Shown in pieces: positions 32,311 through 59,570 of a stretch of DNA of 64,000 bases. The stretch is taken from positions 1,178,001 to 1,242,000 of the forward strand of contig MU008164.1 in the NCBI GenBank assembly GCA_010909165.1, read 5' to 3'. Within the stretch, counting starts at the first letter, position 1. Every line of letters starts with the position of its first letter. Position numbers and translations under genes: made by a program. Source of the stretch: Anthoceros angustus. Its lineage: Eukaryota; Plantae; Anthocerotophyta. Below the pieces are notes generated by a model, which worked only from the letters and a program-made list of their open reading frames with translations, had not been told where the DNA came from and searched no databases.

Positions 32311-33476
32311 ATGGACCTTACCTCCCACAATGAAGTCCCGGTGGAGAACCGCAAGGAGATGAAGAACGAGGAGAAGGAGGACGAGGAGGAGAAGAACAAC
32401 GAGGAGGAGAAGGAGGACGAGGAGGAGAAGGAGGAGGAGGAGGAGAGGAGAAGGAGGAGGAGGAGAAGAAATAGCGAACAAGGAGAACCACCCGTAGCCA
32501 CAACCGTGAGTTGCAATCCTTTTCTTCTATGCTAGGAAATAAACTAATGAAGTAATTATGGAGCCCTTTTCTTCTATGCTAGAAAATACAATAATAAAGC
32601 AATTATATAATATTATCTATAGAATAATTACGATGTGGCATACTAATTGTGGTAAGTATGTTTGTCTTGTTATATTAAAGGTAGTTTAATTATTCATATG
32701 TGTAATTATGGTTGTTTTTTTATAGTTGGAAGGAGTTTATTTTGTTTGCATGTTATAACAAGTACGAGCGTAGGAGTGGACACATGGCTTTGCGGTGTAG
32801 GAAAACCTTTGGATGGAAAGGACGGGACCGGACCCTTTATTGCACCTCCTTATCATCCAAAAGAGGGGAAGATCCAAAGTCTCATGATGCTATTGTTTTA
32901 TACAAGCATCTTTTGAAAGGCGTGTACCCTAGAGAATGGGGAATGTGGGAGAAGGGACCTATTCCTATTAACAAGTCATTTCTATATTGGGGCGAAGGTG
33001 GATAGTGAAGGAGGCAACAAACCCACCATGGGGTTGGGTTTATTTTCCATGGAGAAAATCGTAGTGAGAAAAGATAATGTGAATGGAGTTCCTTTGTTTG
33101 TGTTTGGGGTCCAAAGTATACAGGAGAATATAACAAGATAGTGAACTACAACAGTTACAGTTTCCAAGTATGCATTGACTTTCAATAGACTCCGTAAAGA
33201 TGTTAATGATGGCCCAATTGAGTACCTCGATGGGCATGTTGCATATGGGAATGTGGCGGGATATATGAATAGTAGTAGTGGAAATATCGCAATCAAGCAA
33301 AATTGCATTTGGGAAGAAAGGTCGGATGGGCATGAGCTACTAAGTGACGACCATCTTGATTGGATTTGCACTTGGGCGGTGAGGACCATTAATGCTGGGA
33401 AGAGTTGTTTGTTGATTACAATTGGTATAACCCGAACCATTTGAAGCCAAAAGGAAGGCCGTGCGGGAAGAGTACA
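32311..33476 (+). pseudogene. SET-domain protein (putative lysine methyltransferase) inside the CACTA element, frameshifted
   Basis: Across three 1-nt-type frameshifts: MGLGLFSMEKI (33028-), YLDGHVAYGNVAGYMNSS (~33223-33276), AVRTINAG(E)ELFVDY (33376-33419). These match the SET motifs GxGLFA, GNxARFINHS and AxRDIxxGEELxxDY. A Glu-rich putative first exon lies at 32311-32505. Confidence 0.68.
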
Positions 33477-51100: not shown

Positions 51101-52744
51101 ATGATGAAATGATTTTTGACCAAATAGCTCAGGATCAACTTGAAGGCTTCAAGATGCTAGGACATTCCTTCTTCCTCAACTCTAGGAGCTCCTACTAGAA
51201 ATGGCAGCCCATGTTATAATCGTTGTTGCAATTTTATGTTACACTTCCAAATTGCAACAAGCTATGTAGGCTTGGTATTAAGTTTGACACTACTCCCTTC
51301 TCTTTTTGTCACCATCTTAACACGAACCTAACTCTCTCCCTCATCACCTCACCCTCCTAAGTACACCCTCTCTCTCACAAGCATTGTTTAGGATCCCTTG
51401 AAGTTCAGAGCTTCCAGTCTCTCAACATCTCCTCCTCCTTTTATTGTTATAGTGAATCGTTTTTGCTGTTTGGTCATAAGATTCAAAAATGGAGATAAGA
51501 TGACAATCCTACTGCTTTCGTATTTATAAGAAAAGCCCAAAATAGGTCAAACCCCGCTATTCCAGAATGCAAAGTCTCTCTACCATTAACCGCTTCTCTT
51601 ACAAGTCTAGGTTTGTTTTCTGCCCTACGTAGTTTCATAGTTGAAGTTATCCTTGCAATCAAAGTACGCTTTATTATACAATTCTTTTTGTAAATTGTAT
51701 AATAATTAGATTGTCTCATGTACACTAAAGAAGTGGGACTCCTAAAAAGGACTATCGGCCTATAGTACTAGTACTGGGCACCTTGATAAAGATTTGGATG
51801 CAGTAGATTCAGCTGTAGAAATGGCTCCTTTTGATGACGGTTTGAATACCATGAAGAGTATGAGGAGTAGCCATGGGAGGCCATCGTGAGCTTCAACGTA
51901 AAAGGTTCGCTGCAATCATGTAGCACCGACCTTGAGTTGAGATAAGATTGGCACAAAAGTCATAACATAAGGTTAAAATTATCACTATTTTACCATAGTT
52001 GGAATGAACTGTTGGGAATGGCATTTGGTTTCGTTTAAATCGCAGTTCATCCTTGAATTAAACAATGCCACTGTCATGTTTGCTAGCTATTTGTCACATT
52101 AGATTCTATTGGTGCAACAGATCATGTAGTTTAGTTTTCCCGGTGACAAACAACAAGCTCACCAGAGAATGCAAACCATCAATCTTGTGATGTCATTTAT
52201 CACTGTTTCCCATTTTCATGACATAATAACCTACACTTTATGTCACTTGTAACCTTGTAACATGTAATGAGATATTATCTATTAGAAGTTTGTGTAGTTT
52301 AGAAGTTCACTATTGAGACCTTACAAGAGAAAAATTTACTAGCCATTTAGATTTTACAAGAGACAGGGTTGGCCAAGGCCTTATAAGAAAGGAAGTTCAT
52401 TAGCCTATTGAGCAGTACAAGTGACATGTTCGGTTGGGGCCTTCCGGCTGAGGCCAATTGAACATACACCAAATGGATACACATTTATAGAACGTCGTGA
52501 TTAAGCATCCTGCACTTAGATCGATACTTAGATGGGGTGCGTGAAGGAAGTGGATGCCCTTGGTGCAAGTAGCTTAGGCACACCATGGTACAAGTTGTTG
52601 TTAAATACCAAGTCCTACGACGGAAATATGTCCTTAGTGGACTTAAATAAAATTCTTCTTCTTAGAAGAAAAGAAGTTCATTTATGCTTTACAAATGTGA
52701 GGTTCGGCTAGGCCTTAGCCCCGAGTGAGCAAAAAGGCGAAAAT

Positions 52745-53025
52745 GAAGGCCCAAATGATAGCAGAAATGAAGGCGGAAATGAAGGCGGAAATGAAGGCGG
52801 AATTGATGAAAAGCGGTAATGTTGAAGGCGGAATTATGAAGGCGGAAATGAAGGCGGAAATGTTGAAGGCGAAACTGACGGCAGAAATGAAGGCAGACAT
52901 GATAGCGGAAATCAAGGCATAAATAAAGGCGGCAGTATATGCGGAAACACAGGCGGAAATGAAGGCGACAAGAAGGCGGAAATGAAGGCAGGAACGAAGG
53001 CGGCGATGAAGGCCGAAATGAAACG
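52745..53025 (+). repeat. 12-bp minisatellite GAAATGAAGGCG (EMKA)n at the AspRS fragment N-terminus
   Basis: Direct reading; ORFs 52725..52922 and 52982..53368. Confidence 0.9.
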
Positions 53026-53756
53026 GAGAAGCAGCTGGAGCAAACAGCTGGCGGCGGCGGCAGTCGAGGAAGATCCGCTTGCAGGGAACTTCGGGGTTGT
53101 GGCATTCGAGGCAAGGCAGTCGGAGGAGAGAGTGCTGGTCTCTGGGCGAGCGCAGAACGTGCGGGCACAGGGCGCCATCGCATTTCTCATTGTCCGGAAG
53201 CGGGAGTGTACGATGCAGTGTGTGCTGAGCAAGGGGGAGCACGCGAGCAACAAAATGCTGAAGTTCGTTGGGGGCATCAGCAAGGAAAGCTTAATCGTCG
53301 TCGTGGGCATTGTGTCTGTGCCAGGCACTGCCATAGCCGCGACCTCGCAGCAGGTATGGATGGTGTGAGGAGGTATGAAGTTTCGGATGCTCGCTGCCGG
53401 CGTGTGTTCGTTTTGCTTGTGCTGGCAGGTCGAGATTCAGGTCCGCAAAGTCTACTGCGTCATGAGGGTGGAACCGGTGCTTCCTTTCCACCTTGAGGAT
53501 GTAGCCCGGAGCGAGCGTGACATCGAGAAAGCAGCTGAGGTACGGTACCCGGACGAATGACATAGGTGCGTTAGGGAAGGAGAGGAAAGCCTAGCAATGT
53601 GGTATTTAAGTGATGGCTCATTCTTTTTTGCTCTCTTTGTCCAGGAGAACGTCCAGTTTGTTCGTGTTCTCAAGGACACGAGACTCAACTGTAGGGTTCT
53701 CGACTTGCGCACCCCTGCAAACCAGGAATTTCCAGAGTCAGTCTGAAGTTGCCACG
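52982..53756 (+). pseudogene. Cytosolic aspartyl-tRNA synthetase, exons 1-3 only (anticodon-binding OB fold), truncated
   Basis: EEDPLAGNFG...VLVSGRAQNVRAQGAIAFLIVR..TMQC...ISKESLIVVVGIV...SQQ|VEIQVRKVYC...LPFHLEDVARSERDIEKAAE|ENVQFVRVLKDTRLNCRVLDLRTPANQ. GT-AG introns at 53354-53428 and 53540-53644. Frameshifts in exon 3; catalytic domain absent. Confidence 0.9.
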
Positions 53757-54243
53757 GTAGGTGAGCGAGTCGTCCCCCTCTGCTATCAAATTTCGAAGTG
53801 GATGAAGGATGTTGATGTTAAGGATACTGACGATGATGCAATGTTTGATGGATGTGGCAGTATCTGAGACGGACTACTTTACGGCTCACCCTTGTTGAAG
53901 TCGTTCAGATGCTGAATGTATTTTTGCCTGAGGATTGTTTGAATCTTCCTTCACGTTCAGATTGTGCATGCCCTGGAATGTGTTCGTCTGATAAGGGTAT
54001 ACTTCTCTGAGTAGGAGGCAGATGTAGAGATCAGTACCTTGGGAGACCTGAGCACAGAAGTGGAGAGAAAATTGGGTCAGCTTGTCAAGAAAATGTAAGC
54101 CATCACACCCTTTTTTGGTATGGGTAGATGGCGTGCTAACAGCTTCCATTGTTATTCGCAGGTTCAAAACAGACTTCTACATTCTTTACATATATCCACC
54201 AGCTGCAGTGAGAATTAACGGCTTGGCTGTATTCGTTGTCACC

Positions 54244-55127
54244 ATGCCAGCTCCTGTTTCTCAAGAACCGAATGGAGATGTCACCATTCCAGTTCCTGTC
54301 TCTGAGGATCCGGACCTGCTTGCCCTGCTTACCGAGCCCGACTCACCTTCCCGGTGGATGGTCATGTCATCTTGGGGCAAAAAAAGACCTTGCCAAAGCC
54401 GAAGCAGAGTTGTGGAATCAGGCAAAGGGAGAGGTTTGGCAGTGATTGTGAGCATGGAAGAGGATCGACCTGAAGGAGCGGTAGACAGAGGGCGACTTGA
54501 AGCTCTGTTCAATATTTAACTTCGCTAATAAGCTGTAGACACAGATAATAAGCTCCCTACCCTAGCTAACGACGATTGCATTTTGTGTTGCATTTATGCT
54601 CATAGGGACATAGAAGATGATGGAAGGGAACACATTCTCGTAAGTAGAGCAGGAGCAGGCGGCGAGAAGCTACATGTTGTTGATGATATCTTTAAGCCTG
54701 TCACTAAATGCAGGTTTCTTGCAAACAAGCCAAAGGTTTTTGCGATCATTGCTTGTCGAGGCAGTGGCTGCCTTATCACAAGCCAGGAAGCGGAGGACTT
54801 TGAAGTTGAGAGTAGCAAAGTGGTGAGCATTAGAGCCGGAGAAGTTCGATTCCTGCTTTCTGTGAAGGATTGTCTCGTTTTTTCCTCAACTAGTCATGGA
54901 CAACAATCTTTCAGAAATAACGAGAAAGGCTCAAACTTGATCACAGCTTTGATGAAAGCCATCGTTCCGGGCTGTCGATGATGTGTACAGCATTTTGACA
55001 TCGGTGATTGACGAGGTCACGGGGGCAGAGGTTAAGCTCCCAAGCGAAGCAGGAACGCGCCCGAAGAACCCAGTGTCCCGAATTGTACTCCACTTTCACA
55101 AGAAAGCTTTACAGGTCTTTACCATAG
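54244..55127 (+). pseudogene. Caspase-like cysteine protease (peptidase C14, canonical caspase p20+p10 motif set), disrupted
   Basis: GRGLAVIVS..DRPEGAVDRGRLEALF; DDCILCCIYAH (His 54601-54603); CRFLANKPKVFAIIACRG (Cys 54754-54756); DCLVFSSTSHGQQSFRNNEKGSNLITAL; after frameshifts DVYSILTSVIDEV and QCPELYSTFTRKLY, stop 55125-55127. Three in-frame stops at ~54517-54531. Confidence 0.8.
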
Positions 55128-55559
55128 TTCACTTTCCTGGCTAGCCGAGGTTCGGTGTGGCCATGGTTCTTCATAAGTAACCAGCCTGTAATGGCTTGAA
55201 TCAGGTCTCAGGTATATATCGTCTTCAGCAAGACACTGTCGGCGTAGCAAACTACTTCTATTACTGTGTCGTTTCATTTGCCCTTTTCTGCTCATTTCCG
55301 TTCAGGCTCGCAAGCATTTGGCAGGAGAAACGTCTCAGCCTGTGTGTGTGGATGAACATGTAGGTGATATCCCATGGACGTTAAGGAGGAAACAACGAGC
55401 GAGTTGTAGAGCTGTAGCTGTAGCTGTAGCTTTTGGGTTTAAGAAGCAAGTCCAGATTTAAGCAGTGATTTCTCTGGTCGAAGGAGTTGTAGATGCTTTG
55501 CACGAGATGTGTGTTCTATCCTCCTCACCAGCCCAAGCTAGGACAAGATGTCCCGGCCT

Positions 55560-56200
55560 GGGACGTAGCTGGGGAAGATAGTTGGGTACCATTCGGTAGT
55601 GCCAGGGGTACTGGGTGACAGGACTTTACATGCGGAATTGGGACCCGCTAGATGAACAAGGAAGCCAGACGTGCATATCTGTGGACGATCATAAGGATTA
55701 TGCTGAAGTAGTGTGCGATCTACTTGTTGCGTTCATGTCTCAAACATGATCAAGGGTTTGATTGTTTTTCTTCGTTTCCTCGGACCTACTGTAAAACGGG
55801 ACTCCATTGTGGTGAAAATTTTGCATTGAAGTGGTTGAGGCTCATTCATGAGCAGTAGTTCGTTCTTTCCCGGAGACACCCACCACTTTTTTCAGCAGGT
55901 TGTCTGGGGTCTGTGTGGTTCCACAAGGGCTATTGACTTGGATCGTGTGGAAAATGGTTCTTGGCAGCAGTTCCCCTGCTAAAGCATGCACGACATACTG
56001 GAGCTGAGAAGCTTGCCATTGCCCATCATCCACGTATGCATATCGATCAGCAAGGCAAGTTGCACCTGCTGCCCCAGTTTTGAGCTTCTGAGGTAAGTAG
56101 CTCAGAACCGCTCAGCTCCTGCCGTGTCATGAGAGCATAGTACACTTCCTAACAGCCTCCCAGTACATTTGGTTTTGAGAGGACCTTGTGCTTGGAACCT
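55560..56200 (-). pseudogene. Possible degenerate PPR C-terminal remnant
   Basis: EVYYALMTRQ and TCLADRYAYV segments loosely resemble PPR L2/S2 motifs; weak. Confidence 0.3.
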
Positions 56201-56344
56201 GCGATGTATACCTGTCGCGCAATGTAAAATGCAGAAGGGAACTGCATTTGTGCAATGAATACCGTATATGAATACCTACGTGTTTCATGCTTCATGCCCA
56301 TTACCATGCGTCTGTTACCGGGAATTTAGACTTAAAGCCAGTCT

Positions 56345-57879
56345 GTGGCACCGTGCCTGCAGCATGGACCAAGGCCTCCGGAGTGCAGGGAGAGCTGGTT
56401 TACAAAGCCTGTCTTGTTCAGCAGCCGGAATCCTGCTCGGGTGGGTCCTAAGCGAGGGAGCGTGGTGCGTGAAGTAGACAATTTGTGCAAGGATGGAAAG
56501 ATTGATTGGGCGCTGGATGACTTGTTGTTCATGGATCAGCGGGGTGGTGTGCCTCCGGTGGCAGTGTACAGAAGCCTTTTGCAGGCGTGCATGAAGAGGA
56601 AGGAAATCGTGGAGGCGAAGCGGGTTGGTGCTCACTTTGCAATATCTTGGACTGGAGGCAGACAGGGCTTTGGGCGACTTCATTGTGACCACGCTTTGGC
56701 AATGCTGGACAATATAGAGAGGCTCTGGTCTGCTACCAGCAGATGCAGGAAGCAGGTGTCCAGCCCAACAACTACACCTTTGTCAGCTTACTCAAGATGT
56801 GTGGTAGGATGGAGGACCTAGAGATGGGCAAGCGAATTCATGCTGATGCTGTGAAGTAGGACTTTGAGTTTGATGTCTTTGTGCGCAATACTCTGGTTGG
56901 TATGTGCGCAAAACGTGGCAAGATCGTGGACGCAGAGGAGGTTTTTGACAGCTCGTCTAAGTGGGATGTGGTTTCATGGAATGCAATGCTTGTAGCAAAC
57001 GCTCAGCAGGAGCAGGGAGCAGAAAAGGCTTTGCGAATGTTTCATCAAATGCAGAAAGAGGGAGTTAAGGCAGATGCTTGGACCTTGTCAAGTGTTCTGC
57101 AAGCGTGTAGCACTCTCGCAGATGTGGAGAAGAGTGACAAGCACTGTGTGAAATCGAAGTCTCTGGGAACAAGGAAGGAGATTCATGTGGTAGCTGCTTC
57201 ACTATGCTATGGTTCAAACACCTACGTTGGTAGCAGCCTGGTTAGTATGTATGCAAAGTGTGGAAGCGTTGTGGATGCACAGCTGGTGTTTGATGGCTTG
57301 TCCAAGGGTGACGTACTGGCATGGAATGCGATTCTTGCAGCTTATGCCCAGCTTGGACAAGCCATGGTTGCTGATGGAATTAACAACAGTCTGTCCACAG
57401 CGACTAGTTTAATTTATGCTTATGGAAAATGTTGGAGCATGGTAGATGCACAACGTGTGTTTGACCTGCTTCCCCAGCCTGATGTGGTTTCATGGACTGC
57501 CATGATTGCTGGCTATTCCCGGCAAGGTGATTGTCAGAAGAGTATAGAATGTTACGATGCAATGTTTCAATCGTCAGCGTGACCGGGTAGGAATAATTGT
57601 GAGGAGAAAGACTGCACTGCCAGGCCCTGCCATGGAAATGACGAGCCAGAGTTCTGAGGTTCAATATCTACATGGATGCTGGAATGTGGGAACATGCACA
57701 TGAAACAGGAGTGGAAGGAACCTGGGCAGAGCTGGATCGAGCTTGAGCAGGAGGTCCACTCTTTTCTGGTCGGGGACCATAGGCATCAACAACAGGCAGT
57801 CGTATATAAAGTTCTGGAGACGCTCAAGTCAGAGCTGAAGAGGGCAGGGTATATACCTCATCCAGACTGCATACCGTAG
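56345..57879 (+). pseudogene. PLS-class PPR (E+ subgroup) gene, frameshifted/internally deleted
   Basis: VYRSLLQACMKRK, WDVVSWNAMLVANAQQ, VGSSLVSMYAKCGSVVDAQLVFD, PDVVSWTAMIAGYSRQG, then KEPGQSWIELEQEVHSFLVGDHRH...LKRAGYIP (E+). Split over three ORFs. Confidence 0.88.
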
Positions 57880-59570
57880 TTTGCTACTGACGTGGCCAAG
57901 GCAATATCTTTGCGAGCCTGCACGGAGAGATGTTTCCTCCTACATATTTCACTGAAGCTCCCTAGTTTCTTTGACCCCTCGCGTGTTCATAAGGAACAAA
58001 GACGGCACCAACGTGGCGCCCCGGTAATCTAACTCCCCTGAACGACACGACCCTGCATCCTTGACCTTTCTATACTCTTCTACTACAGAGCATGTTCAGC
58101 TGATTTATTCGTCCGTAACACATGCAGGGCATGCACACGCAACAAACACCACATATGTGGCCTGGTTATGAAGCTTCGTACAGTACTTGCAGGCGCAGTA
58201 TAACATCGACTTGATATGTCGATGCTCGGAGAGACATATATTGTCACCTAGGCAACCAGCACCAACCGATCCATCCAGGTAACGATCTGAGGATAGGGAC
58301 GGTTCGTAGAAATGCGCCTAATGGACACACATTTATAAGAACGTTATGATTAAGCATCCCGAGCTTAGATCGGTACTTAGATGGAGTGCCCAAAGGGAGT
58401 GGATGCCCTTGGTGCAAGTAGCTTAGGTACACCATGGTACAAGTTGTTAAGTACCAAGTCCCATGACGGAAATCCGTCCCTGGACTTAAAGTAAAATTTT
58501 CTTCTTCTTCATTTGGACTCTGAGCAATCCAACAAGGAACATCCTCCATTTGGCCTAAGCCATTTGGATTTTGACCAATCCAACAAGTAGCATCCTATCT
58601 TTCCTTCCTTGTAGACCAGAAAGTTCGAAACCTGTGGACAGTTTTCAAGCAAATCGGGGTAGAAGTTGTCTGGTCCAGATCCATTAGTGTCATTTGGGGA
58701 ATTAGCTGATATGAGAATGGGAAGGTGGAAGGGTTCAGGTGTGAAGGTTCCAGCAGCTGCCAGGTTTCTGATACCCCTCAGGATGATGAACTTACGAGAA
58801 ACTTGGGCAACGAGGAAGATACGGTGTCTCATAATTTCTTAAGTATTTTTGTATCATCTTTTCTCATGCGGAGCATATCTTTTAGTCCTTATAACACCTT
58901 TCAGGAATTATATTATAATTTTGGACAAATGAGTGCAAGGATACTAGTATATTTAGGGCTTGAAGATGGTCAATTGGGTGATGAAGCAAAAGCCCCAAGC
59001 TTAAATTATATACACCATCTAAAAGCTCAAGGGTTTCAAACAATAACTCTACATAATGAGTGTAAGACTTATAGGGAAAAGAAGACTTTATTATAAAAAA
59101 GAGATGGGAAAAACCCATCCACCCCAAAAACAAAGGGCATGCCAAAAACAAAGGGCACCATGCCAAAGGGCACCGTGCCAAAAGCAAAGGGCATCATGCC
59201 GAAGGGACTAGCCGCCACGATCATTCATTTCAAAACTACCAACCGCCCGAAGAACTTCGTGATCAGGAACGTGAAAAGCCCTACTTACCACCACTGTCGA
59301 AGAAGGTGCATCTCCCGCGCTCGCTGTCGTTTCAGTACACTGCTTTGGCCAATGCCATCTGCAGAGCGATGGAAACCCTCTACCGGAAGAAAGCAACAAT
59401 ACAAGAAAGTGTGAGACTTATAGTAATGTTAGGGATGTCAAAAAGGAATGCAATGGATGGGATAAACATGACCAAGTTGAACTACAAGAAAGTGTGAGAC
59501 TTATAGTAATGTAAGGGATGTCAAAAAAGAATGCAATGGATGGGATAAACATGACCAAGTTGAACTTTTT

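Follow-up and report, generated by a model that had tools for sequence, protein, structure and literature searches.

Features of the locus

The 64-kb stretch of Anthoceros angustus DNA analysed here (64,000 nucleotides, hereafter the window) contains, on the forward strand between 54310 and 55124, a Peptidase_C14 domain of caspase type whose motifs follow one another in the correct order. This relic spans both the p20 and p10 parts, has no intron of its own, and was recognised by Pfam, PDB, tblastn, alignment and phylogeny. Reading positions 54244-55128 in the frame of the original prediction reproduced every motif listed there, stops included, and translation, Pfam, PDB and tblastn upheld both their order and their positions. 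From 5' to 3' on the + strand, these comprised RGLAV (54430-54444), DRPEG (54463-54477), AH(R) (54598-54606), KPKVF..ACRG (54727-54762) and the p10 motif SFRN (54907-54918); DDVYSILT and QCPELYSTFTRKLY come next, 3' of SFRN and each in another frame. Alignment located the first Arg of the S1 pocket at 54466-54468, the catalytic His at 54601-54603, the catalytic Cys, within IACRG, at 54754-54756, and the second S1 Arg at 54913-54915. The His-Cys dyad is present in caspase-type motifs, although the invariant Gly that follows the His is replaced by Arg. Both S1 Arg residues are kept, and the position of the pocket Gln is occupied by Ile in the window copy and by Asn in intact plant relatives; the two Arg counterparts and the Ile had all been foreseen from the sequence.

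The 146-aa open piece at 54541-54978 matched Pfam Peptidase_C14 (E 2.4e-11) and, in PDB, caspase-8 best (E 4e-7), followed by caspase-6 and caspase-3. Searching the whole 64-kb window by tblastn with intact relatives returned a single caspase-like locus (54310-54975 plus 55056-55109, E down to 1.8e-21) and no second caspase-like copy elsewhere in the window. Given these Pfam, PDB and tblastn matches, the observation is real and the caspase likeness of the locus is far beyond chance. Its start lies further downstream than first proposed, however. Both tblastn and RNA contigs place the beginning of caspase-derived sequence near 54310, and the ATG at 54244, previously taken as the start, is the Met of a TMP motif derived from aspartyl-tRNA synthetase (AspRS).

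The region upstream, from 53087 to ~54296, is recognisable on sequence comparison as a decayed partial duplicate of a cytosolic AspRS gene. The ORF at 52982-53368 encodes the OB-fold domain of cytosolic AspRS, and within it lies the first AspRS-like exon (exon A, 53087-53353, +), an OB-fold anticodon-binding domain matching Pfam tRNA_anti-codon (E 2.4e-6), human cytoplasmic AspRS (DARS) in PDB (E 2.8e-10), NCBIfam aspS_nondisc (E 3.9e-12) and, by tblastn, the AspRS of contig L006 (E 7.7e-7). Exon B (53429-53539, +) was identified by tblastn and by joints at 53349/53425 and 53537/53643 in the contig of the parental mRNA; its flanking GT..AG introns (53354-53428 and 53540-53644, +) are spliced in this ~91%-identical AspRS mRNA. 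Exon C (53645-53760, +), whose frame changes internally near 53722, was identified by tblastn and by a collinear match to positions 113-130 of aspS_nondisc (E 0.026). It is followed by an intron (53761-53860, +) that is removed, with a joint at 53758/53859, in RNA identical to the locus (0 differences). Exon D (53861-54096, +), supported by RNA and by tblastn (53976-54092, E 0.048; 54045-54092, E 0.025), holds ~97 nt (53916-54012) that are absent from the parental mRNA. A further AspRS-derived intron (54097-54161, +, GTAAG...AG; parental mRNA joint 54097/54167) precedes the last AspRS-derived stretch (54162-54296, +; TDFYIL..VR..TMP), which shares its reading frame with the caspase part. The latter was matched collinearly by tblastn at 54148-54267 (E 0.065), and its end at ~54296 was inferred from RNA depth. 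The AG at 54160-54161 had been read as the acceptor of a host-style spliced 5' UTR; it instead ends an AspRS-derived intron, and what is fused upstream is AspRS pseudogene sequence.

The tblastn comparison used natural AspRS ORFs against 52500-56500 and gave collinear matches at 53123-53725 (E 7.7e-7), 53976-54092, 54045-54092 and 54148-54267. These ORFs came from giant-virus contigs (Pfam tRNA-synt_2, E 7.5e-75); full-length eukaryote-type AspRS occurs on the giant-virus IMG/VR contigs L006 (2-1567), L009 (6356-7771) and L013 (4947-6482), which served as comparison sequences only. PDB, Pfam, NCBIfam and Atlas searches with single short later AspRS exons were blank, and the identity of these exons was settled by pairwise tblastn only. 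With the same natural ORFs, no counterpart was found at the locus for AspRS residues ~213-360, that is, the catalytic core expected before exon D, or for residues beyond 432. The AspRS fragment is therefore unable to act as an enzyme. Had a 3' remnant of AspRS followed the caspase part, the block would be an insertion into an AspRS exon; this was considered and rejected, as tblastn and shuffle tests returned nothing after 54267 or in 55090-55420.

To examine transcription, we compared public DNA and RNA runs of the same organism with 53000-57400 of the window. One RNA contig of 1465 nt was identical (0 differences) to 54308-54822, 54991-55211 and 55364-56092, and its joints were of the GT..AG type; the three matched pieces sum to exactly its length. 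This exact contig and its joints demonstrate that the locus is transcribed from the + strand and spliced. The first intron of this transcript (54823-54990, +, GTGAG..AG; RNA joint 54821/54990) removes the start of p10, including SFRN. The second occupies 55212-55363 (+), and the exon 3' of it (55364-56092) had no recognisable coding content. Exact-match RNA spliced at 53761-53860 indicates that the AspRS-like exons are transcribed too, and adjacent exact-match RNA contigs suggest a single continuous AspRS-caspase transcript. Contigs of one DNA run (X1) lacked single bases at several homopolymers (54626 and others) where RNA agreed with the window; given these gaps relative to both window and RNA, X1 is a noisier witness than RNA at this locus.

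Relatives of both parts are expressed in the same plant. An abundant RNA contig ~91% alike to the AspRS part is spliced at the same introns, and this more abundant mRNA shows the working AspRS gene to be elsewhere. RNA depth over 54323-54616 reached 292 to 705 and came from contigs 90-95% alike to the window. Some of these paralogue contigs continue past 54506, translating to the family-like FETLAFDTDI, and others enter before 54550 from sequence unlike the window; they diverge from the window exactly where its copy has stops and a deletion. Since the paralogue contigs read on at this site, intact and well-expressed close paralogues are present in the same plant. Intact paralogues had been proposed as a check on the original prediction, and these contigs supply them as expressed RNA. 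The protein-homology search with window pieces, within its length limits, and the metagenome and genome scans returned neither same-genome paralogues nor the real AspRS gene.

A direct repeat of ~195 nt, 85% identical (52469-52663 and 58317-58506), encloses the AspRS-like, caspase-like and pentatricopeptide repeat (PPR) sequences; no TG..CA ends or other LTR hallmarks were found in it, and it is probably a dispersed short repeat. Upstream, a 12-nt tandem repeat, AAGGCGGAAATG, of ~23 copies (52734-53022, +) runs into the ORF with the AspRS-like OB fold and would encode a K-A-E-M repeat. Downstream lies a PPR gene (56345-57582, +; PPR_2 E 1.3e-25) whose coding sequence is distributed among several frames. 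At 56322 and 56643 the window disagrees, by indels of 1 nt, with DNA as well as RNA contigs, and the assembly itself may therefore carry small indel errors at this gene.

Decay and probable origin of the chimera

The window copy is a pseudogene, dead and unable to make a protease. Translation, alignment and RNA contigs delimited a diverged patch (54507-54549, +) with stops at 54517, 54526 and 54529 and a loss of ~20 codons. No frame is open across 54517-54545, and alignment with relatives showed that the missing codons fall between the LEALF and DDC motifs. Two further changes affect the C-terminal part. The first, a frame change with a TGA stop at 54979 (54964-54982, +), was seen in translation and lies in the spliced-out part, covered only by the noisy DNA contig; the second (55046-55061, +) was seen in translation and is reproduced by the RNA contig, which is identical over 54990-55209 with 0 gaps. 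No ATG-started ORF was found over the p20 part at the locus. The window copy keeps 21 of 31 conserved columns, the 10 changed ones including the Gly after the catalytic His. With four stops (54517, 54526, 54529 and 54979), two frame changes and ~20 codons lost, no open frame able to yield an active enzyme exists. Thus the clustered stops, short deletion and C-terminal frameshifts reported from the sequence are all real by frame and alignment checks. Editing of the stops in RNA was considered and rejected, since RNA and DNA are the same at these positions.

The arrangement of the two parts bears on how the locus arose. AspRS likeness ends between 54267 at the protein level and ~54296 by RNA depth, caspase-family likeness begins at ~54310, and the AspRS frame runs directly into the caspase frame, which places the junction within 54268-54310. 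The joined unit is transcribed but has no coding capacity, and its caspase part is a single intron-less, domain-sized block. We consider it probable, at roughly 85%, that the locus is a transcribed chimeric pseudogene in which a decayed AspRS duplicate was joined in frame to a caspase-domain block copied from a paralogue of the plant's own. The AspRS part retains introns and is therefore a partial duplicate made at the DNA level; the OB fold and, introns included, a few later exons survive in it, whereas the catalytic core and C-terminus are lost. Near 54300 it passes in frame into an intron-less copy, ~0.8 kb long, of an entire caspase-type protease domain, for which one of the plant's own expressed caspase-domain genes, perhaps by its last exon, would be the source. 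Ectopic repair or a transposon could have done the joining. The caspase part has decayed since then, and the composite is still transcribed from the + strand and spliced via AspRS-derived and cryptic sites. Chimeric and processed pseudogenes built of unrelated gene fragments likewise combine two fragments into one transcribed, spliced, non-coding unit; in this case, however, the AspRS part keeps its introns whereas the caspase part is an intron-less block.

Chimeras of unrelated gene fragments with kept introns and internal losses are typical of transposon capture, and a Pack-type, CACTA or Helitron element could have joined both fragments, making the locus transposon cargo. The structure of the chimera fits such capture, a CACTA element is present at 32311-33476 of the window, and the ~195-nt direct repeat flanks 52664-58316. 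However, neither terminal inverted repeats nor a target-site duplication nor LTR hallmarks were found around the chimera, the span enclosed by the repeats also holds the PPR gene, and the 64-kb window contained no second copy. We therefore regard transposon cargo as an unlikely description of the locus.

It is highly improbable that the locus is an intact, functional caspase-like gene broken only through assembly errors, and this reading is largely refuted. The adjoining PPR gene, in which the assembly departs from DNA and RNA contigs by 1-nt indels (56322 and 56643), speaks in its favour. Yet the same-organism RNA contig is identical to the window both at the stop cluster and at the second frame change, so these two breaks are not errors of assembly, and the suggestion of mis-assembly in the original prediction does not hold. 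The closure of all frames, the absent codons and the replaced invariant residues also weigh against it, as does the removal of the start of p10 from the locus's own transcript.

Affiliation of the caspase-type domain

Of 1.84 billion representative proteins searched in full with HMMER, only 53 matched at E <= 1e-3. The best were unnamed read-assembly proteins and two transcripts of the hornwort Nothoceros aenigmaticus, followed by cricket, mite and mussel caspases. A profile of five plant-type members retrieved 17 close members and, directly after them, animal caspase-3/7-like proteins. We then inferred a quick IQ-TREE phylogeny of 80 domains, unrooted and lacking a metacaspase outgroup, in which each break of the window copy was entered as X and its frame left unmended. 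The window copy fell in a plant clade of 23 (SH-aLRT 99) that holds 13 moss-like and four Nothoceros members and Marchantia polymorpha PTQ31690.1/Mp6g00900/Mp6g00860; within this 80-row unrooted tree it grouped with these Marchantia, Nothoceros and moss-like members, apart from the animal caspases. Such a phylogeny including animal caspases had been named as a check, and its outcome, together with the stops, deletion and replaced residues, agrees with the earlier view that the locus is a pseudogenised representative of a caspase-type family of plants.

Foreign DNA, whether an animal, bacterial or giant-virus contaminant or a recent insertion, is barely credible as the source. The closest non-plant relatives are indeed animal effector caspases. 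However, the fragment is fused to an AspRS duplicate that contains introns, a PPR gene lies downstream, same-organism DNA and RNA contigs tile the junctions, no viral genes were seen beside the locus, and the relatives on Marchantia chromosomes and in Nothoceros transcripts form their own clade.

In metacaspases (C14B) the Cys motif is of the DxCHSG type and the S1 pocket is acidic, accepting Arg/Lys, whereas caspases have a basic S1 pocket for Asp at P1, formed in caspase-1 by Arg179, Gln283 and Arg341. Plant metacaspases share the clan CD fold and the Pfam family with the window domain, but the latter has ACRG and basic pocket residues and not DxCHSG and an acidic pocket. A profile of intact relatives matched PDB chains of caspase-6, -8, -7 and -3 (E 1e-28 to 1e-22). 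The comparison of structures proposed earlier was made with an AlphaFold (AF2) model of an intact relative, P0003 (pLDDT 88), the broken window copy itself not being the modelled sequence; its best 50 Foldseek matches were all caspases (E 1e-20 to 1e-17), with caspase-6, -7, -3, -8 and -9 at TM ~0.7-0.8. No metacaspase occurred among the matches listed for the HMMER, profile, PDB-profile and fold searches. A divergent metacaspase, the kind of caspase homologue to be expected in a plant and one that the breadth of Pfam Peptidase_C14 across both subfamilies would accommodate, has next to no likelihood given the caspase-type Cys (ACRG) and His (AH(G)) motifs, both S1 Arg residues, the caspase matches of profile and model, and the lack of metacaspases among the homologues listed. 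The assignment to caspases rather than metacaspases in the original prediction was thus well founded, on its ACRG motif, on both S1 Arg and on the profile and fold matches listed, which were caspases only.

Animal effector and initiator caspases (MEROPS C14A; caspase-3, -6, -7 and -8) have in common with this domain the motif order R..G..D, His, KPK.F...ACRG, acidic linker, S.R and Q....L..KL, and the window copy shares both Arg residues of their S1 pocket. Identity to them, however, is only ~22-30%. The SHG and QACRG of animals correspond to AHG and NACRG in the plant family, in which no CARD/DED prodomain was seen; an abhydrolase partner and NB-ARC-LRR neighbours were seen instead. The window copy further departs from animal caspases in being broken, in having Ile at the Gln/Asn position and in replacing the Gly that follows His by Arg.

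A caspase-type family in bryophytes

Homology and phylogeny indicate that caspase-type domains form a real family, represented in mosses, liverworts and hornworts. Its members, from Marchantia, Nothoceros and unnamed Logan/JGI/ENA proteins, matched the window by tblastn at E 1e-14 to 1e-21, the linker before the domain aligning from ~54310. They are open reading frames, whereas the window copy is dead and fused to an AspRS fragment. Identity between the window copy and any database member is at most 38%, whereas its same-organism RNA paralogues are at least 90% alike.

The Marchantia members are 807 aa long and carry an alpha/beta-hydrolase domain N-terminal to the caspase domain. Several near-identical 807-aa proteins of this kind, with the caspase-type domain C-terminal, were seen in Marchantia (P0029 cluster: Mp6g00900, Mp6g00860 and MARPO_0052s0114), and NCBI names some of them 'protein SERAC1'. 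Elsewhere in the family, two of the best relatives are found near NB-ARC-LRR genes on two contigs, the caspase ORF lying upstream on the same strand. On both contigs (L001, 591-6739; L003, 139-5957) the order was a caspase-type ORF, a ~250-aa ORF and an NB-ARC-LRR ORF, all on the same strand, and the middle ORF of L003 showed weak thioesterase/hydrolase likeness. Either a single split gene or a tight cluster could account for these three ORFs. The occurrence of the domain at the ends of sensor or switch proteins, or beside them (hydrolase, NB-ARC-LRR), suggests a protease effector switched on by induced proximity, and the family would most likely act as such a proximity-activated effector in immunity or cell death. 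A further step, that bryophytes possess true Asp-directed caspases serving immune or death receptors, with abhydrolase and NLR-linked partners, as their executioner domain, land plants having ancestrally had or acquired caspases, is tentative and in our estimate somewhat short of even odds.

Our literature search found no description of caspase-type (C14A-like) proteins in plants, and a passage of a 2025 paper (PMC12521494) still states that plants lack caspases and have metacaspases only. The proposal that the family was unrecognised therefore stands as regards the literature found but not as regards databases, as UniProt already names the Marchantia members, by automatic annotation, 'Caspase family p20 domain-containing protein'.

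As a transcribed chimeric pseudogene, the locus itself is nothing out of the ordinary, but the gene family from which it was made is unusual. The window copy has no protease function; as a relic, it is evidence of expressed paralogues and of domain mobility, the caspase-type domain having moved about the genome as a single domain-sized block. Interest in the family rests on its intact members. As the clade has members in Marchantia polymorpha, a genetic model with routine knock-outs and protease assays, whether land plants have working caspases is directly testable. If bryophytes do have Asp-directed caspases, the textbook statement that plants lack caspases would be wrong.
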